Below, piece by piece: positions 37,165 through 64,000 of a DNA stretch of 64,000 nt. The notes under the pieces are model-generated. The model did no database searches and was not told where the DNA came from. It worked only from the letters and a program-made list of their open reading frames with translations. The position numbers and the translations under genes are program-made. This DNA is from Blastocystis sp. Blastoise (taxonomy: Eukaryota; Protista; Bigyra: Opalinata): NCBI GenBank assembly GCA_039096225.1, contig JBBPEB010000002.1, positions 930,001 to 994,000 on the forward strand, read 5' to 3'. Numbering within the stretch: the stretch's first letter is position 1; every line of letters starts with the position of its first letter.

Positions 37165-39283
37165 TTAGTCAAATAAATAATCCACCTTATTTTCCTGTAT
37201 AAATGGTGAATCCTTTAATTGTTGTTTATATATGTCAATTCTTTCTTTTGAAATACTGTCAACTATATTACATAATACCAATATAAATAATTATATACTA
37301 TGGCTAAAAATAACAAATTCTTTCAATTTAGGAAACTTTCTATCAGTAATAAAATTGATAAGTTTTGAAAATTGTTTCTCATCATAAATATCTATAAGAA
37401 TGAATATATATAAATAATTAATATAAATACATAATTTCAAACTTCTAATATTTTGAGTTTTATTGTCATTTATACAATCAAACAACGTTTCTATCTCATA
37501 TTTACTCATCGTTTCATCTAAATAAGTGTATTACTTTTATATGATATATTTATGCCTTTATTACCAATAATTGTATTCATAAATGAATGAGTATCATATT
37601 TACATCGAAGAATAGAATTATTTGGATCATACACATAATCATCATGATCATCATTTTCCGATTCTATAGAATAACACTATTAATAAACATGAATAGAAAC
37701 ATTTTATTTATAACATACTACCAAATCGGACAATACTTGAGGATAGAAAGTTATTATTATTTATATATCTACAAAATATTTTAATAAAATCTAGAAACCA
37801 TTCTTTACCAGCTTTACCTATATATATATATACATATATTATATAATAGAAATAATCATTGTCTAATAAAAACATTTATATATAAATATATATGATTTAT
37901 AATTTAAAACATTATTATTATCATTTTTATTATATACAAAATTTGATAGATTTTAATTGAGGGAAATTTATTGTAGTATATAGTTTACAAAAATTATCAT
38001 CAGGTATATCATCAAATAATAAATCTATATTGATTAACATATTATGATGAAATATATAATAAAGCGTAATTAAAAAATTATATATATTGAATATATATAC
38101 CTAAAATTAATTGAGTTGTATTATGGAAACACCCTTTATGAATTAATCGATTTATAAAAGTTATAGAACAACCTAATAAGAATAACTATTAAATTAATAA
38201 AATAAATTATTATTAATTATATAAATAATTACCTTCTATATAAACACTAGAAGCCTTCGGTATTAATTTCTCTAATATATTCTCATATATATTTAAATAC
38301 TCAGATAATGAATCTTCTTCAATAGACGCTACTATATATATATTCATGTAATTTATAATATAGAATACAATTCATAGTTAATTCACGAATATTATTAAAT
38401 TTATTGTTATTAAAAAGAGTTGATATCCATGTTAAATATTCTATACTCATTGTATAATCACCTATAAACAATATAAAATGCATAATAATAATAAACATAA
38501 TCTTAATAATATATATATCAAGAATATACATAGAACAGTTAAATAATTCAAATTTTGCAATGCATTACTTTTTAAGAATCTTTCTAAAGAATTTCTGATA
38601 TTCATTTCATTAAGACCACTATCATCATCATTATTATTATCTATATATATACAAATATTAGTATTAATATTCATTATAACAATATATCTATTAAATATGA
38701 ATGAATACCCTGAAATTGTATACATAAACTATCAATATTTTGATTATTATTTTCAATAGAATCTAATAGTCTAATAGTTTCAGAATAAAAAAAATCAACT
38801 GTATAGAATACCATATATATAATATAAAATAAAATAAATAACTAAAAGAAAAACTAATTTCATACTATCAAGATAATTAATGGAAATAAGATTTTTCTCT
38901 AATAATTCATTTAAATGCGGAAAACAATTAGCATAACTAGCTATATAAACAGCAAATAAATATAATTAATTATATATATAGTATTATGATATAAAATGTA
39001 TATATATAATACCTATATCTAGATCACTTATATCAATCTGAATTGAATGAGTATAAATTAAATTATCTAAAAGAATCGCTATGGACTCTTTTTGATCGTA
39101 ATCAATATTATGTATATAAATAGTATCAATTCTAGATATTAAATTCACAGGAAATAGATACTCAAAAGATTCAATAACTATATTAAGAATAATAGTTTAT
39201 TTATTAACATATAAATATACTTATTGTAATATTGTAGTTGATAATATGTAATTTTGGGAAACATTCTTTCTTTATTAAAGACA

Positions 39284-39326
<43 letters not shown>

Positions 39327-39442
39327 TATTACTATAATCATCATAGATGAGTTCAGTAACATTAGGAAATACATGTGTTGTCATTATTTTGTCAAATAAA
39401 TTCTCATCAATTTTATTAATAAATTTCTTAACTATATACAAT

Positions 39443-39487
<45 letters not shown>

Positions 39488-41007
39488 TAGAAAATAATAC
39501 TCCATGCAACATTTAATGTAGTTAATGAATCAAAAACGCTTTCTTCTAATAGTTTAAAAACCATAGACTTATTTTGATAATCGAAATCTAAAAGTGAATT
39601 ATTCTATTTATTTTATATATTTATTTACCTTCATTTAAAATAATTTTGGAAATAAACAAATAAGAAGGAAGGAGTAATAATTGAGATATACCATGTTTAG
39701 ATGATATTTTATTAATTCTATTTAAGATATTAGTATAAATGCATTATAAAAAATATAATATTATTATATACGTGAATGTTTTATCACTTGTTTTATCTAT
39801 ATATAATAATAAAAAAATAAAAAATTCTATAATATATATATACCAGTATATTTAATCATGACTATATCTTTTAATACATATCCATCTTCTATTTCATGAA
39901 TTTCAAAATTTAGATTATTATTTGTATATATAGCTTCATTAACTACATATTTATATAATTTTGGTAGTTCAGTTTTTCGTCTTTTTCCATTATAGGAATC
40001 AATAGAATTATGGTAATAATAATGTGAACTCTTAAGAATTAAAGAAGAAATCTTATCATATTCATTCATATCGGTTTCAGTATAATACTCATATTTTTCT
40101 GAATCATCTATTTTATAATCATTTTCATTAAATAAACGAATATATTCCATTATATATTCATCACTATTTGGATTTAATAATTGATTAGTTTTCTTATAAT
40201 GCGTATTTACTATATAAATAAGATATATAAATACATATATATATTTATACCAGCTATATTTATTTCTTTTAAAGATGGGAATATATCTTTAATACATGAC
40301 GGACATATATATTCTACTGGAATAGTCGATGAATAATCATCTATATATAGTTTATTTTTATTATTATATATATTTACAAGTAATTTCAACTTTAGTAATA
40401 TTCATCATTTTAATAAGAAGAGAATAATATAAGAATTCATCTTTTCGTTGAGGTGTTATTAATCCTAGATATATATATAATATTATTTATATGAAATATT
40501 TATATATATACCATTAATAAATATTTTTTTCTCTTCTAAACTGAATAAATCCATAGGCATATGTGATTTAAAATAATTACAATAACATCCATCTATATCA
40601 TAATTATTCTCATTTAAATAATTATAAAATAATTGTTTAATATGTATTAAAAAATCACTTTGAATTCCTTTATCAATAGTAACTGAGTAGTCAACAAGTG
40701 TTTGATATATATCGTAACTCTCTTTCAAATTTAATGAAGAAATATCCTTGTTATCGTCAATTAACAAATCAATCACGTTTTTCATTGAAGAAAAAGGCAT
40801 ATCTATATAATAACTACCATCCTCATATTTCTCAGAGTGTTGAATAATATCATAAAAGGGTAATTGGTGATATCTCTCAATAAAATCTCTAGAAATCCAT
40901 AATTTCGTCTCATCTTGAAAAGTAAATAAATTTGAAAGAAAATAAATAATTTATATTCTTATTTGCATACATTTATCTTCAGACAACTGTAATTCAACGT
41001 TTGACAT
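37165..41007 (-). CDS. BTB-like plus LRR-like repeat protein, copy 1 (many exons)
   Basis: N-terminal LWISRDFIERYHQLPFYDII..SEKYEDGSYYIDMP resembles a KCTD-type BTB domain. CPSC motif. Recurrent FPxLxxIxI units (FPSLKEINI, FPNVTELIY, FPKLHIINY, FPQLKSIKF, FPKLKEFVI). The exons I checked join in frame. The gene is clear; the domain calls are inferred. Confidence 0.7.
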
Positions 41008-41287
41008 GGTATCAATTGAACTATAATGACATAATGAGATCAAAAATCATGATAAAAAGTAGGTATATATTAAATATACATTAAACAATTGCTAAAGACT
41101 TTCTCAAATAAATTAAGATTAATATAGGCTACCAAGAAAACAGAATAATATGTTTTCAATTTTTTTTTGATAGATTATGAAAATTATGAAAAATAGCTGA
41201 CAGATTATTTTATTCCTTAGATTATTTTTTTGCAAGTTTTAGATACATTTTTATTTATATTTTCTTCATTTTTAATTATATTTTACA
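41008..41287. promoter_or_regulatory. Conserved bidirectional spacer/promoter between the divergent pair, copy 1
   Basis: 280 bp between two ATGs, alignable with 59547-59832 (shared ATAATGAGATCAAAAAT, AAACAGAATAATAT, ATGAAAATTATGAAAAATAGCTGACA, TTTTATTCCTTAGATTATTT, TTTGCAAGTT). Confidence 0.75.
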
Positions 41288-43509
41288 ATGATAAAAGAAG
41301 GTGTTTTATTTGATTTAGATTCTTTGAATCAAGTTAAAGAAGCTGTTAGTGGTTTAGATGAGTTGATGAAGAAGGTAGTTGAAGGATTCACTTCTATCCT
41401 TTCTTTGACACTTTATTCTGGTCAAAAACTTCAAAATGCTCTTAATAATCTAGATGAAGATTGTATTCAAAGAGGAAGTGATAAATTCTCAAAATTGAAG
41501 CATTTTCTTGATAATGCTACAGGAAAAGCTACTGCAATAATGAATATGAATAATACAAATGATACTGAGCTTATTCGTTTTTCTGGAAATGGTCCTTTGT
41601 TTTCATTATCGAAAAGAATTATCAATTCGATCCCTTATTCCTATATTTATGAGCAATCTGAAGAAGAATTGAGAACAAATGATGGAACTATATTTCTTGA
41701 TTATCGAGGAAACGATGCATCCGTTTATTATTTAATAGATTACTTGAATGGTAAAGTTGTAGATTATAGTCAAATTAAGTTTCGAGAACAATTAAAGTTG
41801 CTAGAGTTATTTGAATTTTGTAATTTACCAATTCCTATAGAATTATTAGATTGTAGAGAAAAAAGAGATAAAAAACAAAAAAAGTATGAAAAAGGTGATG
41901 AAGTCTCTCTTTTTATTAATGGAACAGAAAATGATACGATTAAGAATTATTTAATAAAGAATAATTTATGGGAAGATTATATAATGAGATATAAGAATGG
42001 ATATGTTGATTATGATTATATAAATGATATTAGGTCTATAAATGTTAGCTATAAGTATATGAAGTATATTACTGAATATATGGAAAATGGTTATCTTGAT
42101 ATAAAAGAAGAAGAAATAAAGAATATAGATATCAGTCTATTAGAGAATGAAATGTATAACGTATTTGGTGATCAAGGAAGAGAAGCTACAAATAGAAATA
42201 TGATGGGAAACCCAGATATATTTAAAGACTCAAAGATTATTAATAAAAAATGCTATGAAACTCATTTAGTAAATTGGATAGGTCAAGAAAAGAAATGGAA
42301 ATTATTATTTAGAGCAAGTGACCATGATTTTAAAGCAAGTGAATTCCATAAATATTGTGATAATAAATGTCCTACTGTAACTATTATTAAACACATAGGT
42401 CATAATAAAAGAATTAATATATTTGGAGGATATACTACTCAATATTGGGAATCTAGAAGTGAAAATTGTAAATATATATATTATTATTATTTAAAATTAT
42501 AATACAATATAGTTTGGAAATATGATAGTGGGTCTTTCTTATTTACATTAAGTAATGAGCATGATATTCCTCCTACTAAATATGATATACTTGATCCTTT
42601 TAATGCATTATATTGTGATAAGAATAGTGGCCCTTGTTTTCTAGATATAAGTATTGAAGAGGATTGTCATAATAACAACGATAGTTATGTTAATGGTAAG
42701 ACTGGTGTATATTCTCATAGTCTTACTCCTCAATTTCGATCTTTATTTGTGAATACAGCTGGATTACAAGATAAAAATAATTTTATTGTTGATGAATATG
42801 AAGTCTATGAATTAATACCAAATCCTGATTTATATTTACCCAATTCAATTCTTATTACTAAAGAAATGGGTTTTGAGTTAAGTAAATGGTTTGATGAAGA
42901 TAAAGAATGGAGATTATTATATAGGTAAATTCTATTATTTTTTATAATATTATATATAGATGTTCTGATGAGAAAAGAAGTGTAAAGAAATGGCATGAGA
43001 AATGTGATGATAAAGAATCATTAGTAATTATACAAGGAAAAGGAAAAGATGGTCAATCGTATATATTTGGAGGATATACTAGTGTTGGTTGGGGAAAAAA
43101 TCATAGAGATTATCAAAATCCATTTCGAGGTATGTATATTGAATAAATAAGTATTTTTATATATATAGAAGGTACAGGATTTAGAGCAGATTCAAAAGCC
43201 TTTTTATTTTCATTAACAAATCCACATGGACATAATTATACGAAATTAGATATTAATCCTGACTATACAAATAGTGCATTAATAAGTAATGATTCTATTT
43301 CAGAACTCATATTTTGTCGTGGTATATATTTATGTACTCAAATTGATAAAGATCGATTTACAAATGGTAGTAATGAATTTTTATTTAATGAAGATCCCGT
43401 ATATATATCTCCTTATCCTGAATTAGGAAATAGTTTCTTTGTTAATACTAATAAACCTGATGAAAGAAATGAATTTGATTTAATTGATTTTGAAGTGTTT
43501 ACGAGTTAG
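41288..43509 (+). CDS. BTB-like plus tandem TLDc-TLDc protein (gene A), 4 exons
   Basis: BTB-like LIRFSGNGPLFSLSKRII...DGTIFLDY...YLIDYLNG. TLDc1 WKLLFRASDHDFKASEFHKYCDNK...IFGGYT...FLFTL...EYEVY. TLDc2 WRLLYR...WHEKCDDK...IFGGYTSVGW...AFLFSLTNP...DFEVF. TAG at 43507-43509. Confidence 0.88.
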
Positions 43510-44096
43510 TCATAAAAAAAAATTATCAAAAGCATTTATCTTCTTTTTTAAATCTTTTTTATTATTTGTTCTCTTAAATCTTTTTTATTCATATTAACGT
43601 ATATGTCATTAATAGAATTTATATGTATATATATACAGTTCATATATATATTTTCTTTATTATATACTATATATATTTATATCTATTGTTTTATGCAATA
43701 TTTTCAATATTATTCTTATTAAAATATATATTTCTTTTAGAATTATTAATTTCACAATGTATAACTTTTTTTGTTATGATAATTATTTATTATATAATAT
43801 ACTATTCATTCACATTAAAAAGGCATGAATCATAAATAATATCTAACAGTAAGGACATTAAAATATTATATTATTATATAAATTAACTAAAATGTTTAGA
43901 TATCTTTTTTATGATACCAATGATATGTAAATTCTATTATATATTCACAATTACTAAACATATAAGAAACACAAACAAATAAAAATGATGATAAAAAACT
44001 TGTAATAAGTAATAATACAAATATAAAAATATATATTTTCAGAGTATTTCAAATAGATTCATTCATATAGTAGAAAACAAATATATATATAATATA

Positions 44097-45685
44097 TTAA
44101 GCTCTTCCCCAGACTTCATAATCTTCAACTTGAAAGTAATTCTCTTCATCTGGACCAGCAGTATTTACAAATAAGCAATTATTTTGAGGAGTAAGTCGTT
44201 CTGCATAACGTTCTGCCTTACAATGAGAATTTAAGTTAGTATGATATCTATCAGATATAAGAATATCGAAGAAAAGTCCAAAAACTGGTCCATAAGTAGG
44301 AAAACAAGTTATACCAGTTGTTCGTATTGTACTATCATATACATATTTAGTAGGAGGAATGCCATGCTCATTACTTAAGGTAAATAAAAATTCTTTTGAA
44401 TAAGGTTTGATACCTATATATAGTGAATGAAATATTCATATAATAATATATACATCCTGTTTTAGGGGATTCCCAACTTTGATCTGTATATCCTCCAAAT
44501 ATATTTAGATAATCATCATGACCTATATGTTTAATTAGAGTTACTGTTTCTCCTTTATTATCACAACACTTATGAAATGATTTTGCAGAATAATTGTGTT
44601 CACTTGCTCTATATATCATTTAATAAATAAAATATAACATAGAATGAATACATATACCTATATAATAATTTCCATTTCTTTTCTTTACCTAACCAATTCA
44701 CTAAAGGTATTTCAAAATGACTCACTTTATTAATAATGATAGATTCCAAAAAATATCCACGTATTAAGTTTTTATCTGATTCTTCTCTTCCTTTTTCACC
44801 AAATAATTCAACCATTTCTTTCTCAAATAATTCCTTATTAATATCAATAAGCTTATCTTCTTCTATATCTATAGTTTCATTCTCTATATATTCATTTATA
44901 TATTCAATATAATCATATTTCTTATTCATATATAAACTATTATCAATAGGATTATAATTAATAAATCCATTATCATAATTATTAACATAATTATTCCATA
45001 ATCCATTCTTAACTAAATAGTCTTTAATACTATCATTCTTCTTTCCATTAATAATCAAAGAAACTTCATCTCCTTCTTCATATTTCTTCATCTTTGTATC
45101 TCTTCTTTCTCTACAATCTATTAATTCTAAAGGAATAGGTAAACCACAATATTCAAATAAATCTAATATTTCTAATTATTCTTCATAAGAAAAAGAATCA
45201 AAATCTACTTTCTTTCCATTCAAATAATCTAATAAATAATAAATAAAAGCATCTTGACCTTCATAACAAAGAAAGATAGTTCCATCATTCGTTCTTTTTT
45301 CTTCTTCTCGTTGATCATCTATAAAAGAACCTTTCAATGAATCTAAAACAGATTTCGATATTTGAAATATAGGACCATTATTGGTAAATCGTATCAAATC
45401 CATATCATTATCATATTTATCATCCATATTGACATTCATATTCTCATTATTATTACTTTCATAAACACATTTCTTTTCAAATTCATTTCTTTCACCTTCT
45501 TTTTCAATAAAATCATCTCCAATATGTTTTATAAGTCTATTTATCGATATTCCAGAATGTATTCCAAGATTCATTACTGATCCAAATACATTAACAACGT
45601 CTTTCATCAATTCTTCATATACATTAATATCCTCCTTCAATCTATTAAATTTATCAATATCAAATAACACCTTTTCTTTCACCAT
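44097..45685 (-). pseudogene. BTB-like plus TLDc gene (gene B) with one in-frame TAA
   Basis: ORFs 45176..45694 and 44609..45091 are in the same frame, separated by TAA at 45176-45178 where the paralogue has CAA (SYEEQLE). The rest, including the TLDc ending EDYEVWGRA, appears intact. Confidence 0.8.
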
Positions 45686-45958
45686 TTTCAACAAATAAAG
45701 TAATATATCGAATTAAAAATTTCAAAAAAATTCCCTTTGAAAAATTTGTTTTGAGAGTTGTAGTTTTTTACAAAAGATTTAGATTTTCACTTAATAACTT
45801 ACATTTTCACATTATTATATAACCTATGAACTTGTTGCAACATTGTGAATATGAATCTATGGTATTAGATTTCCTTTCTGTTGCAAATGAAAAATGGTTT
45901 AACCTAGAAATAGTAATTTTATTATTAAACTATATGTATCAAATCATAAATATAGTTT

Positions 45959-48900
45959 ATGAACCAGGAAGCAAAGAAATATTATAATTTGAATACTTCT
46001 GGTATAAGATTTGAGAGAGAAATGAGTCAAACTAAAATATGTGATTATTTTATAAATGAAGGAGATACTTACTACATTTGTAATACATGCAGCATGTCGC
46101 CAAACCTAGTATTTTGCAAAAAATGTTGGAATGAAGCAAATCATGTTGTATTTTTTATATTCTTAATGAATAACAAATTAGGGTCATGATTATCATGAAG
46201 TATTATGTGAGAATAAAGAATCGTATTGCCATTGTGGTCTATTCAATATAAAATATGATGGATATTGCGAGAATCATAAAAAAATTTATGACCATTTCTT
46301 TTCTTCAGAAGTGATTAAACCTATGTATATATATAAATTATTATTATTATCATTATACTTTTATTTATTATTAATCTTTAATTAAATATGATTAGATCAT
46401 TACAATGGTATGAAACCTATTGTCATTTCTGTATATATGCATTATTTTATTATACAAAAATATCAAATGATAAATACCGTTTTTTAGTATGATAATAATT
46501 ATTTATGTATATATATATATATACAATATAGAAGGCAATATCAATAATGAATTCATTAATTTTATTATGTGAATCAGATCTATCTATATATACATATATA
46601 TGTACCTTCTTCTCTTCTTCTATAGAGAAACATAATTCTCTATTTAATAAGAAAATAGTCGACATCGATCGTTCGTTCTTAACTCTTATTACTATAAAAG
46701 ATCAAGCACCTTTCACTTTGTTATTACTTATTAACTGTTTTATTTGTGAAGATAAAACATATCAAGTATAGTCTTCTAAATCAATAATAATCTAATTATA
46801 TATTATTATATATAGGACATTTGTAGATATTTTTTATGTTTGCTTTTTAAAGATCCATCTTTTCTTAATCTGTTTTTTACATTATTTCCTTTATTCTTAT
46901 GGTATTCCAGTATAAACTATTTAAATTTTGATAGTATATATATATTTTATTCTATTATTACTTTTATAAATTAAGTATATATGTTTCATTATTTCTGTAA
47001 TTATAGATCAAATGAATCTAACAGAATCGTTTTATTTGAATCAAAGTTATGGTTTTTCAATATTATCAAGTTATTTCGATTTTTATGATTTTGATCAATT
47101 TAAGAATTCTTCTTCATTTTCTATTATTCACATTGCTGCTCTTCCTGATTTATATACATATATAAATGATACAACTAATTATACTCCTCAACAACAGTAT
47201 TTTAGACTTATTCAGTATATAATTAATAAAGTTGTGCATGTAGCAGTTAAGAATGCTTGTATATATATTATATTTAATTATACTGTATATTACATGCTAT
47301 TACATAGTAATTCAAAATAAACCAAGAATATTTATTATAAATATTTTGTTACAGTTGTATTACTGTAATCACAATGAATTGATGCCTTATATGTATATTG
47401 ATAAATACACTTTAACTATAGAAGAATCAATACTTGACACTTTTTTATGTATTCATGTATGTAAATATAATAAATATAATAAATATAATAAATATAATTA
47501 ATATATTAAATATATAAAACAATACATAACACATATAATAAATATAGTCCATCCTATCAGGTGATACTGATAATAGAAATAAACTACTTTATACTACCCT
47601 CATAGAATGTGGAGAATATTATTCTTTATGTGATACACTTAGAAATCTATTCTATTCTATATATAATGATATTAAGGCTTTTATCCATGTATACTATATT
47701 ATATATATATTATATTATTATTGTATATAGAAATCAACAAAAGAAGAGTCAATTACATTATTAACAAATGTTATTACAATATATAATAAGATATTACTTG
47801 GTGATATTCGAAAATGTTATAATCTAAATCAGAATAATGAATATAATATTGTTCAGATTTTTATTGTTATATTATCCATGATTTTGTATGTTTATATTTA
47901 ATAATTTTTATTCTCATTTATAATCTATATTATTATAATGAAAATAATTATTTTATAACATGAGATATATATATATATAGATCTGAGATTTATAGTTGTT
48001 TTGGTGTTTGTAAATTACCCTTAGAAATTCATTCTACATTATTCTTTATTTATCATATATCATTAAGTCAATTTCTATATATATTTCATTTGATCTCTCT
48101 TAATGATGATAATGATGATAAAAATAATTATTTAGATCTATTTGCTAGTTCAATTCAATATCATTTTTTAAGTATAGCTGAATATTATGGTATCTTACTT
48201 CAAGTATATTATTTATGTACATATTATTTAAATTTAGTTACTTTATTGTTATTATTACTATATATATATAGATTCTTCCATTATATATAAATGAATATGA
48301 TTCTATGACTTTATTCTTATGGTATATATACAAATGATATAATTATTTAGAAAAGAAAGAAATCTATAAGGATATTAATATGCTATATAATGATATACAA
48401 GAATTATATAAGTTATTTTCTGTAGTTGATATACATAATTATATAAATGAAATATGTCCATTTGTGACATTATATGATGTTATACGTTTATTATTATGTA
48501 TTCAATATGATCCTTGCTATACTCTTGATAATTATGTATATAAATATATATCTATTTCTTTATTATATATATATATATATATTTAGTTCATAGCAAAGAA
48601 CAAATTATCATCATTATTTTTTAAAAAACATTCTCCAAATAAAGATATATCATTAATTGTGAAAAGAAAATCAAATGCTTCTATTGACATACCAAGTGTA
48701 CCAGATGTAAACCATATATATATATTATATTATACTTATTATGTTAATAACATTATAGTATTTGCAATACATAATATATGATTATGTTTTTCAATCTGAA
48801 TATGATGATCAAACAAAAATGTATCATTATTTATTTATTTATTATAAACATTGCTTTCTAGAAGTCATCTGTTGTACGCTATAAAAGCAACTGAGAATCA

Positions 48901-50065: not shown

Positions 50066-50099
<34 letters not shown>

Positions 50100-50509: not shown

Positions 50510-50569
<60 letters not shown>

Positions 50570-50716
50570 CTTAATATTTACATATAAATATAATTATATG
50601 TTATCTAGAATAACCCAAAAGATATAGACATAAGTTTTTATGTAGCTATTTTATCTTTTTATACAACTTATCTTTTTTCAAATAATAGTAGACTTTACGT
50701 ATATAGTTAATAGTAG

Positions 50717-50773
<57 letters not shown>

Positions 50774-52895
50774 CGATTATATGTGACTTATTTCCAGAAT
50801 CTATTCTTTCTTATGAATATTCTTCTCGATGTATATATATAACTATATATATAATATTATAAAATTAATAGTTTCATTATTAACAATGAATCAACAAAAT
50901 CAACTATTATATACTCGAAACTTCATATTTATTCTTCTCAGAATTCTTTTACATGTATGATAACATATTCATAATTATTCATTTACTCTTATTTGAATAA
51001 TAATTCTAAGCATTCTTCTTTTACATTAATTTATATATAGTCTGGTTATGTTACATCACATTGTCTTTCTAATTCCACATTTCCACATTTTCATGCTTAT
51101 TTTACACAAACCTTATTTACGATTAATGGCCTATGTCAGAATGATACTGAATTGATGGATTCATATTTCTGTCAACATCCTATTCAACAATTAAATAAAA
51201 GTATAGAATATACATTTGATATACATTTACGATTAATTGAAGATCTATTAAAATTTTATTATTTATGGAATGATAAAACATTATATAATAGAGAGAAAGA
51301 GAAAGAGAATATTCAGAGAGATCGAGAAATATTATATGTTGATGAAAATGAAGTTGCGTTTAAATATATTAATATACCTATAGATGATTATTATGAAGAA
51401 GCATATCAACAATATATCCAAGATATGAAGAATAGTAAAGATATATATTCAGAATATATAAAAAAATTAATAGGAAATATTCCTTTTCCTATGTTTAATG
51501 AAGATAATAAACATTCTATTTTTAATAATGATCAATATGGATATATATTTGAAAGATATAGATTTCGTTATATAAATATACTTCATTGTAGAAATACTAT
51601 ATTACAACCTTCAATTAACAATAAAATTCGTACTCCTTATGATGATTTTAATAATATATTTGTACCTCAATTAGAAATATATACTTCTGAAATTGATCAA
51701 TATAAATTAGATCATGATATAAAAGATATAGATATTCAATCAAAGTTAAAAGATGTTGAATATGTTTTTATAGAAACCTCTCAACATACTGCATTCTATA
51801 TAGATATTTTACAACAAATGATGGAAGATCTTTATTTATATTATGAAGATATAATGTGTAACAATAAACAAAGTAATATACGATATATATATTTACTTAT
51901 GGCAAATATATTCTATAATTTAGCTGATTATAACGAATCTCATTATCCAGTTGAAATTTCAACTGCATACCCTCGATTATCATTATTATATACAAAACCA
52001 ATTGGATATCATGAAATTATCAAGTATTGCTATGTGATGGAAGACCTATTATTATTTAAACCTTTATTAACTCAAATGACTCAAAATTATATGTCTATTT
52101 TTTCAGAAGAATCATTATTGTCGATTATAAATAATAATTCTACAAGTTTCTCTAAACAAGATTCAAATAATAACAATAATAAGTTATTACAATGTATTAA
52201 TATATCAACTATAATTAAGAAAGACTGTGCTACTTCTATTGATATTACTAGTGATGATTATTATTATTTTATTTATTTCTATTTAATTATTACAATTCAT
52301 ATAGAACTATCAAAATTTACTATTTTAAATGATCCTAAATATCAATATAATCCTGATTATCCAATTATTTGGGATCAAAATAAAGAAGTGAATATACAAA
52401 AAATGAATAATACAACTAATAATATAGATGAAAATAGAAATGAAGAAGGAAAAGAATCAAGTGAAGTAATAAATGAAAATGAGATGAATTTTGAATCATC
52501 GAACTTATATAATAATTTCTTTAATCCTTTAAAAGTTATATTCCTTCAGTTGACACCAAAAGTATTTTCAGATACATATATAAATTATTATAATACTCGA
52601 AAATATCCATTTGTTATACAAAATGATTATTCTTCATTTCTGAATTTCCAACAGAATTATATATTAAATCAAACATCTATATATAAATCACATTATAGCC
52701 TCCCATTACATTATTCAACTATAGAAATATCTTCAAAGAGTATTGTTGAATATTTACAATTGTTCTTTGAATTATATGATATTGATACTAGTATAGTAAA
52801 TATTTATAATTTTATAAACCAATTATTCACCCAAAAATTATCATTTAAACAACTTTTATCTTTATATACTATTGATCCATGTATATTTATATATC

Positions 52896-52980
<85 letters not shown>

Positions 52981-54956
52981 TTACATATATATAAATAATT
53001 TATTTTATATTATTCATAATATTCTATATAGTATTTGTTGATTATCAATATATATTAATTGGTTTACTTGCATCATATTCAGAAACTGGTCCGTCTTATA
53101 TACATCAACTTAATGTATGCTTAATGGGAATAATTACTTGTAACACTATGGTGGTTAATAATAATACTTTTGTAAATGATATCAATTCATTTAAGTCTAT
53201 TAATCAAAATATTGAAAATTATCTAAAAGTTAAATTAGAATCTAATCATCCATATTTATCAGATCATGATATAAATCAATTAACACATAATTCGATTATA
53301 TTTAAACCTAGAAATATAGCCAAGGAATTTATTAGTTATTTATTTTGTCATTTTCCACTTGGAAATAATAATGGTAAGTGATTTATATATATTTTTTTCT
53401 TATATATATATATAGAAATGACAATTTTATTATATAAACATTTCAAAGAATTATATCCAGTTATGTATAAGAATAATAAATTAATTATTTTACTTCAATT
53501 AATGGTACTTATTCTTCACAAAGATTGTTGTATATATAACTATAAATATATATTTTATCTATATTATTTTATATATAGTAAAATATTTATTTTATTACTA
53601 TCAAACAGCTCTTGAATCTGATATATGTATAGTTTTAATTATAATTCTTATTATTAATATATAATATATATAGTCGATTTTCAACGTGAATTAGATGGAA
53701 ATGGTAACATTGATGAAGATATTTTCACATTCTTTTCAATTGTTAAAGAATGGGAAAGACGTGAAATATATGTATATGAAGAGATTCCTTATGAAGAAGA
53801 AATAACGAATATGTTATTAGAAAAAGGAGTATTATAGATATTTTATAATACTAATAATTATATATATATAGATTACGTATACTGTTCAACAATTATCTAT
53901 TCCATTTATGAGATCGTTATGTATATATATATATATATATATATAATACACATCATTCTGTAAAAATATCGAATCTATTTCTCTATATATATTTCTATAT
54001 ATAGATTTATTAAATATTATTCTTTCTCCTTCTTTTATTCCTTCTTCTGATATTTCTATTCCTACCTCCTTCTCTTCTTTATATACATACCTCTCTCTAT
54101 CTTCTTCTCCTTCTATTTTATCTCTATTAAAAAAGAAACCATGTGATTTTATTACTAAAGAAGTAATAGATGTACTCAGTTTCGATGTATTAAAGTATGT
54201 ATAATTATTGAAAAATATATCTATTTTAAATATTCATTTTTTTGTAGAATGTTTGAAATGCCTTATTATTTCTTCATATTAGATTTTGATCTGAGTTTCA
54301 AACAATGCGAATTCTCACTTTTAAATAAATTAGTATATTTTCTTTATAATACTATACTCTATTTCATATTTATTTATTAGCTTTATTTATCTGAAAAAGA
54401 AATAAAAGATCTTTCTAAGAATTGTGTTTGCAATCAATGTAATAAAAAGAGCAATCAAATGATATGTATGTGTATTGCTTGTGGACAAACAGTATACTCT
54501 ATATAATAATTAATAATAATTGATTTTATATTATTTTTATCATTTTACTAGGTTTGCTATTCATGTCAGCAAAATAGGCAATGTATAAAACAATACTTAA
54601 ATGATGACACTAATTTTTGTCATTGTTGTATTTTCATTCAACTATATAGTGGAACTATATATTATTTTGGAAGTGAGAATTGGTATATAATACTTGGAAA
54701 TCTGTAAGTTGATATATATATATATATTTTTAATTATAAAATAATTCTTTCTTTTTTATATATAATACATTATTTACTATTATTATTTGTTTATAGTTTT
54801 GATTTAGTACATTCCTTATTATTAGAAGATGTAGATATAGAAAAGAAGAATGAAAAAGAAATGAAGGAATTAGCTATTCAAGAAATTACTTCACTTTTAA
54901 ATAGAAATGATATTAGTCAACGAAAAAAATATCTAAATAAGATGTATGATCTTTAA
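45959..54956 (+). CDS. Divergent UBR1/PRT6-like E3 ubiquitin ligase (UBR box, RING-like domain, C-terminal Cys-rich domain), highly fragmented by introns
   Basis: UBR box CDYFINEGDTYYICNTC...VFCKKCW...NHV|GHDY...YCHCG. RING-like CAAC...SCNHPIHYTCF...PCCKCGQLYNFMIP. C-terminal CNQC...CMCIACGQT|VC. The true start may be slightly upstream. Confidence 0.8.
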
Positions 54957-55187
54957 TTTATTTAATATATATATGTTTATATTCTAATTGTTATCTAAAA
55001 AATTGTTATGCTTATTTTATATTAAATACATTCATTTTTATTGTTAATTATTTTACTAAGTATTTTTATTATTTTTTAATAAGCTTTAAATAGAAAAGAA
55101 TATATTTCCAAAGTCATATGTAATATATAAATAATTTAATTATATATATATCTAATATTCAATGGCTAGAAATGAACTATATTCTTT

Positions 55188-55358
55188 TCACTACCTTCCA
55201 AATATTTTGTGACTCTTGTGGTGTCTTTTTGTGATAATCACTTTAAGTCACTTTAAGTCTGTTTTTTATGACTCAGTATAACAATATATATTTTTTCATC
55301 AAAAACTATCAAAAGTAACACATTTTTCTGTGACAATTGTGGTGCAATATAAAAAAGA
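55188..55358. repeat. Degenerate non-coding dispersed repeat, copy 1 (direct repeat of 62265-62421)
   Basis: TCACTACCTTCCAAATATTTTGTGACTCTTGTGGTG versus TCACTGTCTTTCAACTATTTTGCGATACTTGTTGTG, then CACTTTAARTCA and CACATTTTT..TGACAATT in the same order and similar spacing. Confidence 0.7.
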
Positions 55359-55614
55359 CCTTATGGAAGGCAGTGATTAAAAATATTATAATAATGAGTT
55401 TATGATAATCACATAAAATACTTTTTTATATATATAAAATAAATTTTACCTTATTTGTGTTAGATTTAGTTACAACCTTCTTAAAAAATAAAAACAAACA
55501 TCAATTTTATATATATAATTAATAAAAGCATTAAAAATAAAGTAGATAAAAAAAAAATAATTAAACATAACAATAGAAAGAATAAAAATATATATACAAA
55601 AGAAATAAATAAAT

Positions 55615-55970
55615 TTAAACAAGTTTATAATCTACATGATTTTCATGAATAAATAAAGAATGCTCTAATTGCTGGTTATATATATTAATTTTGTTTCTTG
55701 AAATATTATTACCTAAATAACATAATATCAGTATAAATAATTATATATATATACTGATATTAAGAAATAACTCTTTTAATTTGGGAATTTTTCGATTAAT
55801 AATAAATTTGATAAGTTTTGATAATTGTTTCTCATTAAAAATATCTATAAGATTAAATATTATTTAATCTATTTAAATAAATACAAAATTCTAAACATCT
55901 TATATTTTGAGTTTTATTTTCATTAATACAATCAAATAACGTTTCTATCTCAAATTTGTTCATCGTTTCA

Positions 55971-56047
<77 letters not shown>

Positions 56048-57464
56048 TCAGAACCAATAATTGTATCTATATATGAATTCGTATCATATTTACATCGAAA
56101 AATAGAATTATTAGGATTATAAATATAAACAATTTTTTCCGAATAAGGATCTATAGAATAACAATATTAATGAATATAAATAGAATCAATATTATAATTA
56201 ACATACCACATAAATAGACAATACTTGAGGATGGAAAGTTATCATTATTTATATATGTACAAAATATTTCAATAAAAGAATTCCACCATTCATAACTATA
56301 TTTATCTATATATATATACATATATTATTTTATAAAAATAATTGTTTACATAATGATAAGAATATATATAAATATACATGATTTATAATAAAAAATATTA
56401 TTATTATTATATACAAAACTTGATAGTTTTTAATTGAGGGAAATTATCTTTAGTATATAGTTTACAAAAACTATCATCAGGTATATCATTAATGTCTAGA
56501 ATAATATTTATATAAAAAAAGAAATAGATATAGTATATCATAGAATTAAAACATATACATACTTAAATATAATTCAGTTGTATTTAGGAAACACCCTTTA
56601 GGAATTAATCGATTTATAAAAGTCATGTAGCAATCTAATAATAATAATTGAAATTAATTAAATAAATTATCATTAAACACAATAATTATACATATATAAA
56701 TAATTACGATTTATATTAACAATAGATGCCTTAGGAATTAATTTAATCATAATACTTTCATATATAGTTAAATATTCAGAGGATGATTCTTCTTTAATAG
56801 AATCTACTTTATATATATAGATTCATATATATATATATATAATATAATATACAGCCAATCGTTAATTTATGAATAGTATTAAACTTATTATCATTAAAAA
56901 GTGTTGAAATCCATGTTAAATATTGTATATTTATATATTTATAAACTATAGATAATGCACAAAGAATAATAATAATAAAATATATATAAAAAAAATACAC
57001 AATATAGATAAGTTATTCAATTGTTGTGATACATTACTCTTTAAGAATCTTTCTAAAGAATCTTTTTTATCAATCTCTTCATCACTATCATCATCATATT
57101 CATCATCTATAATGGATAAATATTAGCATTATTATTATATATCAACAATATATTTATTATATATTATGAAATACATGTGAATGTTATATATAAGCAATCA
57201 AGTCTTTGTTTATAATTTTCCATAGCATCTAACATTTCAATATTTTCAATATCAGAAGAATCAACTATAGAGAATAGTATATATATATAATATAAATAAT
57301 ATATGAAAAGATTTTTAAAATAAATTGTCATACTAGAAAGACAATCAAATAAAATAAGATTGTTCTCTAAAAATTCTTTTAAATGTGGAAAATAATAAAT
57401 ACAATCATCTATATAAAAAGTAAATAAATATAATTAATTATATAGATAGTATTATAATCTTAAA

Positions 57465-57501
<37 letters not shown>

Positions 57502-57784
57502 CGTGTATATTCATCAATTATATAAATATGAATAGAATGGGTATAAACTAAATCATCTAATAGAATAGCTATTTCCTCTTTTTGATCATTATTAATAATA
57601 TTTATATAAATAGTATCAATCATAGACATTATATTAACTGGAAATAGAGACTCAAAATTATCAATATCTAGAATAAGAATAATAATTTATTTATTACATA
57701 TACAAATATACTTATTTCAATTTTGTAATTGATAATGTGTAATTTTGGAAAGTATTGTTTCTTTATTGAAGATAATTGGAAAGG

Positions 57785-57836
<52 letters not shown>

Positions 57837-57973
57837 TATCATTATCATCTTCTTCTTCATCATCCTTATATATAAGTTCAATAACATTAGGAAATACATG
57901 AGTTGCTAGTATTTTCTTTAATTGATTATCAAAAAATTTATTATTTATTTGTTTAACTATATTGAATAATAAC

Positions 57974-58009
<36 letters not shown>

Positions 58010-58724
58010 TAAAAAAAATACTCCAGTCAACACTCAACGTAGTTACAGAATCAAAAACACCTTTTCCAACTAATTTTATAAAATCCACAAAATCATTTTG
58101 AAAATAATTATCTAAAAAATAATTATATTTAGTATTATATATATTTACGTTCAATTAAAATGTTTTTTGATATAGACAAATAAGAAGGAAGAAGTAATAA
58201 TTGAGATATACCATATTTAGAAGATACTTTATCAATACTATTTTACAAATTATTAATTAAATTAATAACATAAAATAATAATAATATTATTTACACGAAT
58301 GTTTTATCATTTATTTTATCTATATATAATAATAAATTATATTATTTTATAATACATATATACCCGAATATTTAATTATTACTGTATCTTCTGATGTATA
58401 TCCATTAGCTGTTTCATTCATTTCTACTTTTGAATTCTCATTTGTATATATTGTTTCATTAATTATATATTTGGAAAATATATTTAATTCCCTCTTCTTC
58501 CTTTTTTCATTATAAGAATCAATATAATTATATGAATTATTCACATCATTCAGATCTAAAGAAAAGATTTTATTATATTCATTCATATTGGAATCAGTAT
58601 AATATTTACATTTTTCATGATCATCTATTTCATCATCATATCTACCAGATATGTTATTATATTCCTTTATAAATTCATCATTAGTCAGATTTAATAGTAG
58701 CTCAATTCTCTTATAATGCGTAAT

Positions 58725-58771
<47 letters not shown>

Positions 58772-59010
58772 TATACCAGTTATTGTTAATTCTTTTAATG
58801 AAGGGAATATATCTTTAATACACGACGGACATATATATTCTAATGGAATATTTGATGCATAATCATCTATATATATATATATATATATTATAATATATTG
58901 TGTTAAAAATATTTACATATAATTTCAACTTTAGTAATATTCATCATTTTAAAAAGAAGAGAATAATATAAGAATTCATCTTTTCTATTTGGTGTAAATA
59001 ATCCTATATA

Positions 59011-59042
<32 letters not shown>

Positions 59043-59546
59043 GGAATTACCTTTTATAGATATTGATAGTCTCTCTGAATTGAATAACTCCATAGGAATA
59101 CGTGAATCAATGTCTTTATAATAATATCCATCTATATCATAATTGTTTTCTTTCAAATATTTATAGAATAATTCTTTAACATGAAAGAATAAATCACTTT
59201 GCTTTTCATTATCAAGTGTAACAGAATATTTAAAAAGTATTTCATATATATCATAACTATCTTTCAAATTTAATGAAGAAATATCCACGTTATCTTCCAT
59301 TAAAAATTGAATCACATTGTCCATGCTCAATGAAGGCATATCTATATAATAACTACCATCCTCATATTTATCAGAGTGTTTAATGATATCACAAAAGCGG
59401 AATTGGGGATATCTCTCAATAAAAACTCTAGAAATCCATAATTGCGTCTCATCTTGAAAAGTAAAGAAATCTGAGAAAAAATAAATAATTTATATTCTTA
59501 TCTACATACATTTATCTTCAGATAACTGTAATTCAGCGTTTGACAT
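55615..59546 (-). CDS. BTB-like plus LRR-like repeat protein, copy 2
   Basis: Colinear with 37165-41007 with matching intron positions: MSNAELQLSEDK|YFFTFQDETQLWISRVFIERYPQ...EDGSYYIDMP, YICPSCIKDIFPSLKEL. TAA at 55615-55617. Confidence 0.7.
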
Positions 59547-59832
59547 GGTAGTAATTGAACTATAATAACATAATGAGATCAAAAATAATATAAAAAAGCG
59601 ATTATATATTAAATATATGGTAACTGATTACTAAAAACTTACTCAAATTAATTAAAACTAATACAGGCTATGAAAAAAACAGAATAATATATTTTCCGTT
59701 TTTTTGATAAACTATGAAAATTATGAAAAATAGCTGACAAATTGTTTTATTCCTTAGATTATTTCTTTGCAAGTTCTAAATAAATTTTTTTTTTTAAATT
59801 TCATTTTTTGTCATTTTTAATCATATTTTACA
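59547..59832. promoter_or_regulatory. Conserved bidirectional spacer/promoter, copy 2
   Basis: 286 bp, homologous to 41008-41287. Confidence 0.75.
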
Positions 59833-61375
59833 ATGATAAAAGAAGGTAATTTATTTGATTTAGATTCTTTGAATTAAGTTAAAGAAGCTGTAAGTGGTTT
59901 AGATGAATTAATGAAGAAGATTGTAGAAGGATTCACTTCTATCCTTTCTTTGACACTTTATTCTGGTCAAAAACTTCAAAATGCTCTTAATAATCTAGAT
60001 GAAGATTGTATTCAAAGAGGAAGTGATAAATTCTCAAAATTGAAGCATTTTCTTGATAATGCTACAGGAAAAGCTACTGCAATAATGAATATGAATAATA
60101 CAAATGATACTGAGCTTATTCGTTTTTCTGGAAATGGTCCTTTGTTTTCATTATCGAAAAGAATTATCAATTCGATCCCTTATTCCTATATTTATGAGCA
60201 ATCTGAAGAAGAATTGAGAACAAATGATGGAACTATATTTCTTGATTATCGAGGAAACGATGCATCCGTTTATTATTTAATAGATTACTTGAATGGTAAA
60301 GTTGTAGATTATAGTCAAATTAAGTTTCGAGAACAATTAAAGTTGCTAGAGTTATTTGAATTTTGTAATTTACCAATTCCTATAGAATTATTAGATTGTA
60401 GAGAAAAAAGAGATAAAAAACAAAAAAAGTATGAAAAAGGTGATGAAGTCTCTCTAAATATTAATGGAAAGAACAATGATATGATTAAAAATTATTTAAT
60501 AAAGAATAATTTATGGGATGATTATATAATGAGATATAAGAATGGATATGTTGATTATGATTATATAAATGATATTAGGTCTATAAATGTTAGCTATAAG
60601 TATATGAAGTATATTACTGAATATATAGAAAGTGGTTATCTTGATATAAAAAAAGAAGAAATCAAAAATATAGATACTAGCTTATTGGAGGAAGAAGTAT
60701 ATAGTATATTTGGTGATCAACAAAAAGAAGCTGTTAAAACATATTTGAATGGAATACCAACTGTATTTGCGGATTCAACGATAATTGAAGAGAAATATTT
60801 TGAAACCCAATTAGTGAATTGGATAGGTAAAGAAAAGAAATGGAAATTAATATTTAGAGCAAGTGACCATGATTTTAAAGCAAGTGAATTCCATAAATAT
60901 TGTGATAATAAATGTCCTACTGTAACTATTATTAAACACATAGGTCATGATAATAAGATTAATATATTTGGAGGATATACAAATCAAAGTTGGGAATATC
61001 ATAGTGCATGTGGTATATATTAATTATTTTATATAATTATTCAATATAATTTATATAGGTTGGAAATCTTATTCAAAAGAATTTCTATTTACATTAAGTA
61101 ATGAACATGGTATTCCTCCAACTAAATATGATTATATTGATAGTGATAGAAGTTATGGTATCTTAAATAGTTATTTTGAGGGTCCCATATTTGGAGGTGG
61201 CAATGATATCCATATATCTGAAAATTGTCATAGTAATATTAATTCATATTGTAATGCATGTTCTTATTCTGAAGTGAATACTCCTCAAAAATCATCATTA
61301 TTTGTGAATACTAATAATGTTAATTCTAGAAATTACTTTACAGTAGAAGATTATGAAGTATGGGGAAGAGCTTAA
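59833..61375 (+). pseudogene. BTB-like plus single TLDc gene (gene C) with TAA at codon 15; may still be expressed from the in-frame ATG at 59911
   Basis: Paralogue of 41288. TAA at 59875-59877 replaces CAA. Otherwise open through one intron to EDYEVWGRA-stop at 61375. Confidence 0.7.
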
Positions 61376-62264
61376 AATAGGATAATAAATTATTATTTCT
61401 CTTATTTTCTTTCTTTATATATATTGTTTTCTTTTCTTTATTAGAGTTTTTTCATTATATATATATTATTTTAATAAAAAAGAATATAAAATAGTTTTGT
61501 TAATTGTATTCTTACTATACTTATTAGTATTAAAAGTTTATTAATATTAATTAGTATATAATATTTCAAGAATAAATAATTTTGTTTTATTAAAAATACT
61601 TTTGTAAATATATTTATTTTATAGATATATTAAAAGTAAGATAGAAATCCTAAGAATAAACCAATAAAATATATGTAGGATAAGAATTCTATGAAATAAA
61701 TATCAATACAATCTAATCTATTTAAATAAAAAAATTTTTATTGAAAGTATAAAACAAAAGATAGTATTTAAAATAAAAATGAAAGTTGATTCTATTCTTT
61801 TATTTATCAAAAAAAAAATTTCTATAATCTACAATAATAGGAATGCTATATATATAAATATCAATTTATATAATGTATAAATAAAAATATATTATATCTT
61901 TGAATTTTTTGTAAAAACAAAAAATTAAAAATAGTAAAATCAAAATATAGAATGACTATTATTCAATTAAAAAATGAACAAATATATTAAAATATTAATA
62001 AAAAAAGTTATTGAATACTTAAATACACTAGAGAATATATTTTATAAGCAAGAATAAATTGAGAATAGTATATAATTCATGAATATTATATAATTTATAT
62101 AAAATAGTTAAATGAAGTTTTTAAAACTATTAATAACTATAATAAAATGAGAATAATAATGAAAATAGTTTTTATTTTGATGAAGAGTATAAATACAGAT
62201 AAATATTTAATAATATAGAAATATAATTAAAGAAGATAGATTTGATAAATATATTAAAATAGTA

Positions 62265-62421
62265 TCACTGTCTTTCAACTATTTTGCGATACTTGTTGTG
62301 ACTATCATATAGATACACTTTAAATCAGACTTTTTATTATGGAATATAAAATATTTTTAATAGTTAAAAAATTAACAGAAGTGTCACATTTTTTATGACA
62401 ATTACTGTTCAAGAAAAAAAG
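62265..62421. repeat. Degenerate non-coding dispersed repeat, copy 2
   Basis: Alignable by eye with 55188-55358. Confidence 0.7.
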
Positions 62422-62628
62422 TGTTTCAGCGAAGTGAGTGTTTATTCTTAATATATATATCAAAACATTGAATAAAAATAAATTTTTAATAGTTATTGGC
62501 AAACAAAACTTAATAGAAGATTATAAGTCATCAGTTATTTATACCATTAAAGATTATTAAAATTTAATTGTTAATAAAATATAATTATAGTTGTTATAAT
62601 AATAATATGTATATAAACATATTTTTTT

Positions 62629-64000
62629 TTACCATACTTTATAATTATCTATTTAAAATGATTCACCTTCTATGAGCAACTAGTATTTATTAATAACGAG
62701 TATTCTTTATTAGTATTTGAAATACTAAAGTGATTTGCAATATAAGAATTTATATTACTATAATAATCCTATACTATTTCTATATCATCACCCATATAAT
62801 CAGGATAATATAAATAACAACATATACTACTTTTTTATTATTATTATATAATCATAATTGGTTTGAGGAATACGCTGCTTGTTTCTTAAAATAGAAACTC
62901 TATTGAAAATGGTTTCCAACCATTATATTATATATTGAATAATCTTCTAAAATGACAATTATATACAAACTTCATGAATTATCCCAACTTTAATCTGTAT
63001 ATCCTCCAAATATATACATATGGTTGTTATGATCTACATGTTTAATAAGAATCACTGTTACCCCTTTATTTTCATAATAGTTTTGGAATTCATCTTTAGA
63101 ATAAGTATATTCACTTGCTCTTTATATATAGAATAAAAAATATTAAATCACACCTAACTAATAATCTCCTTTTCTTTCCCTTACCAAGTCAATTTTGAAA
63201 TTGATAATCTATATTCTTATTATAAAGAATTGAATAATAAAATTGAGGTTTTATATTTAAATATAATTTTACTTCTCTTCCTTTTTCACTAAATAGTTCT
63301 ATCATTTCTCTCTCAAATAATTCTTTATCAATATCACTTATCTTATCTTCTTCTATATCTATAGTTCCATTATTCACATATTCAGTAATATATTTAATAT
63401 ATTCATATTTCTTGTTCATATATAAACTATCAGTTATATGATTATAATTAATAAATCCATTATCATAATTATTAACATAATTATTCCATAATCCATTCTT
63501 AACTAAATAGTCTTTAATAATATCATTCTTATTTCCATTTATAATTAAAGAAACTTCATCTCCTTCTTCATATTTCTTCATTTTTCGATCTCTTCTTTCT
63601 CTACAAGCAATCAATTCTAAAGGAATGATCAAACCACAAAATTCAAATAAATTCAATAATTCTAATTGTTCCTCATAAGAAAAAGAATTAAAATCTACTT
63701 TCTTTCCATTCAAATAATCTAATAAATAATAAATAAAAGCATCATTACCCCTGTAGTCAAGATATATGAATCCATCATTTGTTCTATATTCTTCTTCACG
63801 TTGATCATCAATAAAAGAGCCTTTTAAGGTATCTAAAACAGATTTCGATATTTGAAATATTGGACCTCTATTCGTAAATCTAATGAAATCAATATCATTA
63901 GCATGATTAGCATCTATATTGACATTCATATCTTCATAATTATTACTTTCATAAATACATTTTTTTCAAATTCATTTCTTTCACCTTCATTTTCAATATA
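62629..64000 (-). pseudogene. BTB-like plus decayed TLDc pseudogene (gene D, paralogue of gene B); 5' end lies outside the window
   Basis: The BTB-like part is open (63189..63929) and very similar to gene B. The TLDc part has TGA for Trp (N*LGK), TAA for Gln (GYTD*SW) and frameshifts, ending in ...DNYKVW*. Confidence 0.85.

Follow-up and report, generated by a model that had tools for sequence, protein, structure and literature searches.

KCTD-type BTB domains form tetramers or pentamers, and some of them recruit Cullin-3, as recorded for instance in the titles of two PDB entries matched here (8i79 and 8u80). Lineage-specific expansions of ubiquitin-ligase adaptors are represented by the BTB-MATH proteins of nematodes and grasses and by the F-box families of plants, and head-to-head gene pairs are familiar from plant nucleotide-binding leucine-rich repeat (NLR) proteins such as RGA4/RGA5 and RRS1/RPS4. 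Large, clustered and fast-turnover families of adaptor-like proteins usually mark conflict, that is, immunity, viruses or self/non-self recognition. The TLDc domain defines a class of V-ATPase-interacting proteins (PMC8608904, PMC9263379, PMC11066047, PMC11094088), and the Bombyx protein Bmmp, a BTB-BACK-TLDc protein, requires its BTB domain for function (bioRxiv 10.1101/2021.07.26.453796). Here we analysed a stretch of 64,000 nucleotides of Blastocystis sp. 'Blastoise' (contig JBBPEB010000002.1, positions 930,001 to 994,000; below called the window), in which genes with BTB-like, leucine-rich repeat (LRR), TLDc and UBR-box parts stand in a repeated order. We read the window as two copies of a recurrent cassette drawn from four lineage-expanded families, designated L (BTB-like N-terminus and LRR), T (BTB and TLDc), X (divergent BTB-LRR) and U (UBR box), and assign this reading a probability of roughly 0.72. 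The layout of the cassette as such was confirmed.

Layout of the cassette in the window and in the genome

When positions 36500-46500 were compared with 54500-64000 by blastn, the segment 36977-42595 matched 55427-61141 in one collinear alignment (79.8% over 5815 columns), which includes the complete L gene and 188 bp 3' of it, the spacer and, on the plus strand, the first T exon. The convergent T gene on the minus strand is covered by another match (44303-45509 with 62816-63998, 79.1%); between the two matched blocks, blastn gave no alignment of 42.6-44.3 kb with 61.1-62.8 kb. The order described in the first-pass annotation (L on the minus strand, a spacer of about 280 bp, T on the plus strand, T on the minus strand) is thus present twice, with the spacer and the 3' flank of the L gene both inside the collinear match, and the distance from ATG to ATG is 280 bp in one module (41008-41287) and 286 bp in the other (59547-59832). 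The first module is nearer to a copy on contig C23 than to the second module, and hence the two modules of the window are not a simple local duplication.

The source strain, Rus-B, originates from the gut of a Russian tortoise, and its genome, described in PMC10690189, is assembled in 34 contigs with a total of 33.3 Mb. We read gene models exon by exon and took full-length relatives from the protein database; the exons of both L genes in the window, of the two minus-strand T genes and of U were searched singly, as unspliced pieces. The T family comprises at least 103 loci (first-exon search, 103 scored of 504 candidates; 155 database proteins), the L family at least 122 (strong places in a search with the N-terminal exon), the X family about 60-72 and the U family about 10. 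All these family sizes are minimum values, which makes the proportion of genes in pairs uncertain. Of 297 scored family genes, 232 lie within 15 kb of another member, and 43 divergent pairs with 5' ends less than 2 kb apart were found, compared to about 1.3 expected from random placement. Pairing, first noticed in the two copies of the window, therefore recurs widely. The divergent pairs include 12 L-T pairs with a 5'-end gap of 270-300 bp (about 285 bp), 17 L-X pairs with a gap of about 340 or about 925 bp, and 11 T-X pairs with a gap of about 205 bp. In addition, 36 of the 122 L genes are followed by a T gene in tandem, 4.4-5.7 kb from start to start, and 35 of these 36 pairs were used for the tandem analysis, so that at least 35 L-> T-> tandem loci stand beside the 12 head-to-head ones.

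The unit that recurs has the order <-L X-> <-T U->. In the window and at C23:688-694 kb (contig and position), the X position is filled by a T gene with two TLDc domains, and the second module of the window closes with a T gene that stands head-to-head with an X gene just past the window end (C15:994778). At all 12 L-T loci the T gene facing L belongs to the same subfamily as the plus-strand T gene of the first module (65-100% identity). The tandem T genes form two classes when compared with the family member P0012, one with 64-100% (mostly 70-87%) and one with 37-42% identity; loci L016, L017, L021, L023-L025, L030, L032, L034-L037, L039 and L040 are set apart from the others in this comparison. 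L genes of one clade precede either T class (L034 versus L029), which makes the cassettes mosaics.

The U gene had been seen as a ligase gene that the modules merely flank, a view that did not hold, as U is itself a part of the repeating unit. Close copies of the UBR-box exon number 8. At 6 of them (the window copy, C3:478020, C16:1691547, C22:843184, C26:814697 and C23:693816), a T exon on the minus strand stands head-to-head with U, its 5' end at a distance of exactly 274 bp. A distal U exon recurs 6.9-8.2 kb downstream at all 10 U loci, which indicates that the U copies are full-length. The possibility that the UBR gene is a single-copy bystander was ruled out by the approximately 10 loci and the fixed T-U gap. 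About 10 full-length paralogues of a UBR-box gene of about 9 kb in one 33-Mb genome represent an unusually large UBR-box family; further loci are found at C16:1691547-1698781, C22:843184-850508 and C19:325116-333532.

The genes of the first module begin with L1 (37165-41007, minus strand), which encodes the BTB-like N-terminus and the LRR part in about 18-20 short exons and is apparently intact; tblastn with the annotated family members P0121 and P0123 covered residues 1-869 exon by exon. Just 3' of L1, at the usual site of the tandem T gene in an L-> T-> cassette, lies a truncated TLDc fragment (36600-36944, minus strand), in which 36697-36944 corresponds to the TLDc exons of T3 (73%, opposite strand) and the open reading frame (ORF) 36604-36873 holds the TLDc core motif. 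The N-terminal part of about 1 kb is gone, and by comparison with the tandem layout at 35 other loci the fragment is the remnant of a tandem T gene behind L1. The L1-T1 spacer (41008-41287), a presumed bidirectional promoter, lies between the start codons and is alignable across 12 loci. T1 (41288-43509, plus strand, four exons) encodes a helical hairpin, a predicted KCTD-type BTB, an alpha/beta middle domain and two tandem TLDc domains, and it is 100% identical to the annotated WA158_003604 (P0001, 700 aa). Convergent with T1 is T2 (44097-45685, minus strand), a single-TLDc gene in which the exon 44371-44619 matches the TLD family of Pfam (E 4e-10). T2 has an in-frame TAA at 45176-45178 where its paralogue T4 has CAA (Gln), and it is probably a young pseudogene. 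The large UBR-box gene U (45826-54956, end approximate, plus strand; UBR box at 45959-46382) is head-to-head with T2 at an ATG-to-ATG distance of about 140 bp.

In the second module, L2 (55615-59546, minus strand), the paralogue of L1, has all exon blocks matched without internal stops; tblastn with residues 14-865 of P0123 gave 17 clean blocks. The divergent L2-T3 spacer (59547-59832) measures 286 bp. T3 (59833-61375, plus strand) is chimeric: its 5' part is of T1 type, and its last exon, with a single TLDc, is of T2 type, being 59% identical to that of T2 versus 51% to that of T1. Codon 15 of T3 is TAA (59875-59877) where T1 has CAA, and the annotated protein, WA158_003608 (472 aa), starts at a Met further downstream. 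T4 (62673-64000, minus strand, running past the window end), the paralogue of T2, has a pre-TLDc stretch that is out of frame and degraded TLDc exons, and is probably decaying.

Long (TA)n microsatellites lie in L-gene introns (37800-37900, 39280-39330, 55970-56045, 57790-57835 and 58720-58775); they match one another and swell the match lists of blastn. Outside the cassette, positions 13304-17845 hold a single-exon ORF of 1514 residues with He_PIG and F5/8 type C (discoidin) domains, and positions 20251-22194 an ORF of 648 residues with weak matches to the barrel and insertion domains of B12-dependent (class II) ribonucleotide reductase. Both are without introns and could be bacterial-type acquisitions.

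Domain content of the four families

The TLDc identity of the T family was borne out by Pfam. PF07534 was found in every T gene, with E-values of 1e-25 (T1) and 8e-20 for whole proteins and scores of 91 bits for T1 (two stretches), 71.8 for T3 and 78.3 for P0012 at a gathering score of 24.5 bits; the matches of single exons were likewise above this score. A phmmer search of the PDB with the TLDc domain found no solved TLDc chain at E 0.01. Residues 1-315 of T1 were modelled with AlphaFold2 using 56 paralogues, and the predicted local distance difference test (pLDDT) was 83-92 over residues 90-305. In this model, residues 90-195 superpose on the BTB domains of KCTD17, KCTD9 and KCTD10 with Z scores of 10.3, 10.1 and 10.0 and a root mean square deviation of about 3 A over 97 residues (VIA). 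The best 50 VIA rows among 48,161 chains were all of the BTB fold (BTB/POZ, T1, Skp1, Elongin C), the top 50 Foldseek matches of the BTB region were all KCTD/T1 proteins with a TM score by target of about 0.7, and an Atlas shape search with the same region led to BTB_2 proteins. The predicted structure thus confirms a KCTD/T1-type BTB at residues 90-195 of T. The first-pass annotation had placed a KCTD-type BTB-like segment at the start of all partners; its fold was found in T, but not its position, as the domain follows a helical hairpin of about 85 residues. Between BTB and TLDc the model shows an alpha/beta middle domain (residues 197-305, window approximately 41876-42202, pLDDT 79-92). A database search with the first exon of T1 gave 120 best matches, all from Blastocystis sp. 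'Blastoise', and the combination of BTB_2 and TLD is widespread (Rotifera, Evosea, diatoms), with BTB-BACK-TLDc proteins in arthropods.

The L family was modelled on its full-length member P0123 (869 aa, encoded at C29:630230), with a pLDDT of 81 and a predicted TM score of 0.75. The model contains at least 18 beta-alpha units and a solenoid at residues 364-869, which matched the LRRs of NLRP, TIR1, COI1, D3, FBXL and ribonuclease inhibitor in Foldseek with E-values of 3e-6 to 1e-4. Foldseek gave 60 matches at E<=1e-3, and every listed row was an LRR protein, as were the best 50 VIA rows (Z up to 10.8). The LRR-like character of this partner is therefore borne out by predicted structure only. 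The N-terminus of L is probably a BTB domain: a profile comparison with the BTB of T gave an hhalign probability of 86.7% (E 4e-6, 77 columns), residues 12-120 of the model show the b-b-a-a-b-a-a-a order of a BTB at a pLDDT of only 60-80, and BTB_2 of Pfam was weakly matched by 2 of 23 L members (E 0.04). A search of 1.84 billion representative proteins with this N-terminus found only 29 clusters, and 10 of 10 that were checked came from this strain. X proteins (P0148-like) align with L over the full length at 23% identity and are a divergent BTB-LRR family. In U, the UBR box (PF02207, E 2.5e-8, 34.3 bits versus a cut-off of 25.2) was the only part recognised by Pfam.

In the LRR part of L2 (55615-57800) and L1 (37165-39300), each exon of 21-32 residues corresponds to about one LRR unit; the strand spacing in the model is 27-33 residues, and the exons are parted by introns of about 50-120 bp. 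Such an exon-per-repeat structure could ease repeat shuffling. One protein annotated in the L family, P0133 (WA158_006655, 1174 aa), has a C-terminal NEMP domain (PF10225, E 2e-21), which reflects either a real fusion or merged gene models.

Copying, turnover and the weighing of explanations

At the 12 head-to-head L-T loci, where trees and distances rest on about 230-310 bases per part, the distances of L correlated with those of T (Mantel r 0.56) and with those of the spacer (r 0.68), and only 0-2 of 5000 permutations were as high, which indicates that the block spread as a unit. The spacer, with a mean pairwise identity of 79%, was compared with third codon positions of L (76%) and T (89%) at the same loci. 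It evolves like silent sites; extra constraint on it was rejected, and recent ancestry explains its conservation. Among the tandem L-> T-> pairs, of which 35 were compared, L and T distances were only weakly correlated (r 0.39, a value reached by 0 of 5000 permutations), L and T agreed on the nearest neighbour in 8 of 35 cases, and some pairs join closely related L genes to T genes of the other class. The gene trees of the tandem pairs are thus congruent only in part, and the pairs point to co-duplication followed by reshuffling. The head-to-head pairing is at present explained first by descent from one copied block, with functional coupling possible.

Birth-and-death evolution, which had been proposed for the locus, is supported by gene conversion, the chimeric T3, TAA nonsense codons and truncations. 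Positions 41381-41910 of T1 (plus strand) are identical to 59926-60455 of T3 over 530 bp, with a synonymous divergence (dS) of about 0.3 outside this tract according to exact string comparison and windowed analysis, and the identity is attributed to gene conversion. The TAA codons of T2 and T3 are read as ordinary C-to-T nonsense mutations at CAA, each requiring one base change in an AT-rich genome. Reassignment of in-frame TAA was ruled out, and likewise a ciliate genetic code for the window was rejected, since in other parts of the window ORFs reach 1,500 residues under the standard code; the introns of the window are short and AT-rich. About a fifth of T and L first exons contain stops genome-wide. 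The ratio of nonsynonymous to synonymous substitution rates (dN/dS) was 0.46 for T1/T3 and 0.40 for T2/T4, and for L1/L2 it was 0.40 in the LRR exons, 0.64 in the middle part and 0.77-0.83 in the BTB exon. The comparison by domain that the first-pass annotation had suggested thus revealed no excess of amino-acid change in the LRR of L1/L2, and positive selection was not seen there. Within the L family, pairwise identities differ between the BTB-like part (64%) and the LRR (38%), and within the T family between TLDc (65%) and the N-terminal helices (39%). Each family thus has a constant part, the BTB-like N-terminus in L and the TLDc in T, and a variable one, the LRR in L and the N-terminal helices in T.

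Whole units (<-L X/T1-> <-T U->, or L-> T->) have spread to many contigs by segmental duplication. Gene conversion has since made copies more alike, recombination has produced chimeras, and some copies have fallen to nonsense mutations and truncations. The proteins may be cytosolic scaffolds of BTB oligomers, in which LRR subunits would bind variable ligands and TLDc and UBR-box subunits would supply a constant output, for example ubiquitin-linked turnover or V-ATPase control, and the short shared promoters could give paired expression. A number of observations weigh against this picture. The BTB and LRR assignments rest on predicted structures and one profile-profile match. Neither BTB_2 (PF02214) nor BTB (PF00651) of Pfam matched T1 or 23 BTB segments even at E 10, sequence-profile searches of the PDB with the N-termini of T and L returned chance matches only, with no BTB for T, and no LRR family of Pfam matched 8 L family members at E<=1. 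The N-terminal exon of L1/L2 evolves almost neutrally. U carries the UBR box of N-recognin E3 ligases (UBR1/2/3 type), but no RING or other ligase domain was seen in the 11 exon-sized pieces scanned of a gene that has many further short exons. A six-frame scan of the genome for Cullin (PF00888), insensitive in this intron-rich, AT-rich genome, found no Cul3-like gene; it found one cullin gene (C15:289500-293400; L051, L052), whose largest exon is closest to human CUL4B (E 8e-4). Finally, shared promoters and co-expression of the divergent pairs are assumed.

A more far-reaching proposal is that L, T, X and U together make up a combinatorial system of intracellular recognition for which no counterpart has been described in protists. 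In it, variable LRR subunits (L, X), in their hundreds, and constant TLDc subunits (T) would be co-assembled via KCTD-type BTB oligomers, with dedicated UBR-box ligases (U) and with combinations set by shared bidirectional promoters; foreign or aberrant proteins, once bound, would be destroyed by way of ubiquitin, or V-ATPase would be controlled locally on the large central vacuole. We consider this speculative and rather improbable.

The first-pass annotation had favoured a two-component sensor/adaptor system. In its strict form, L and T of one divergent pair would be obligate partners, assembled with each other through the BTB and serving surveillance or defence in the manner of plant NLR pairs. 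Several observations favour it: divergent pairing over short spacers is pervasive and occurs in several classes (L-T, L-X, T-X, T-U), the BTB-like domains of L and T are homologous and belong to the KCTD/T1 type, which oligomerises, a variable LRR and a constant TLDc fit a sensor-plus-effector pattern, and the families are very large with fast turnover. Against it, each pair class derives from copied blocks, and partners were reshuffled, as seen from the poor agreement of nearest neighbours and from locus L034, whose L gene is near that of L029 while the T classes differ. The absence of extra constraint on the spacer and of excess amino-acid change in the L1/L2 LRR also speaks against it, and at least half of the L genes have no scored T gene within 12 kb, in lists that are incomplete. 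Such a system is therefore regarded as unlikely, if the least far-fetched of the alternatives.

If instead ectopic recombination had dispersed the segmental duplicates through a genome whose intergenic DNA is long, most copies could be redundant or decaying and the layout would be without functional meaning. Stops in about 20-30% of the scored first exons, the damage to T2, T3, T4 and the 36.6-kb fragment alike, the near-neutral N-terminal exon of L, a spacer that evolves like silent sites and active gene conversion speak for such neutral or selfish amplification. We hold it to be very improbable in view of purifying selection on T (dN/dS 0.40-0.46) and on the LRR exons of L (0.40), first exons that are open in most copies, multi-exon L genes that remain intact with about 20 introns, and the many members annotated by a pipeline that demanded introns backed by RNA-seq (PMC10690189). 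Carriage of the block by a transposon or a giant-virus insertion could account for the finding of the cassette unit on many contigs; giant viruses, too, have expanded LRR and BTB families, and matches in BFVD were Mimiviridae-like LRR proteins at fold level only. These viral matches are, however, generic LRR folds with 10-14% identity, no transposase, integrase or capsid gene was seen among the cassette genes annotated here, the base composition of the cassette region is uniform with that of the remaining window (G+C 18-31%), and the local arrays have the mixed orientation typical of unequal crossing-over. An origin as mobile-element or viral cargo is thus extremely unlikely.

The cassette among described systems

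Blastocystis is the commonest eukaryote of vertebrate guts, and to our knowledge almost nothing is known of conflict-type systems in this organism. The finding is larger than first seen: the four families of the cassette, with about 300-350 loci, correspond to about 3-4% of the 8,547 genes annotated in strain Rus-B (PMC10690189), and TLDc, BTB and LRR genes are unmentioned in the main text of that genome paper. The cassette offers natural material on the role of BTB-TLDc proteins and on the question whether subunits that carry different arms can join in mixed oligomers by KCTD-type BTBs. Even if no more than co-duplication lies behind the pairing, the locus still shows how segmental duplication, gene conversion and LRR genes with one exon per repeat shape a protist genome. 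The statement of the first-pass annotation that no system with this layout has been described agrees with our search, as none was found in the literature searched, and to that extent the layout is undescribed.

With regard to single domains, the BTB of T superposes on KCTD/T1 proteins (KCTD5, 7, 9, 10, 16 and 17; T1 of Kv channels) with Z scores of 10.0-10.3, whereas sequence identity is only 13-23% and BTB_2 of Pfam remains below threshold. In contrast to KCTD proteins, the BTB has here a long helical hairpin on its N-terminal side and TLDc or LRR on its C-terminal side, without the C-terminal domain of KCTD. Among BTB-TLDc proteins of other organisms (BTB_2 plus TLD in Rotifera, Evosea and diatoms), clusters with PF07534 and PF02214 are nearest to T, with a language-model score of 0.94-0.96. 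Those BTB-TLDc genes are single- or few-copy. The T genes, in contrast, number more than 100 and lie in cassettes together with LRR and UBR genes, and some of them encode two TLDc domains. In insects, the proteins (Bombyx Bmmp, Drosophila CG7102) have a classical BTB-BACK, T a BTB of T1/KCTD type. The V-ATPase-binding TLDc proteins (OXR1/Oxr1p, NCOA7, mEAK-7, TLDC2, Rtc5p) appear by sequence to share only the TLDc domain with T and are without the BTB that T possesses.

The solenoid of L aligns over 180-430 residues with LRR receptors (TIR1, COI1, D3 and FBXL, the LRRs of NLRs, and ribonuclease inhibitor) at Z scores of 9-10.8. L resembles F-box LRR proteins in that its LRR is linked to a probable adaptor domain of the Skp1/BTB fold class; unlike these and unlike NLRs, it has neither F-box nor NACHT, and its adaptor is probably a divergent KCTD-like BTB. 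Pfam revealed no NACHT or NB-ARC domain of plant NLR pairs in L or T. Plant BTB-BACK-LRR clusters ('FBL11') were found in an Atlas feature search with L at a score of 0.83-0.84, which is a lead only. As in the expanded adaptor families and the paired NLRs, the cassette consists of large, clustered and fast-turnover adaptor-like families arranged in divergent pairs; the domain sets differ, and here several families are interleaved in one cassette.

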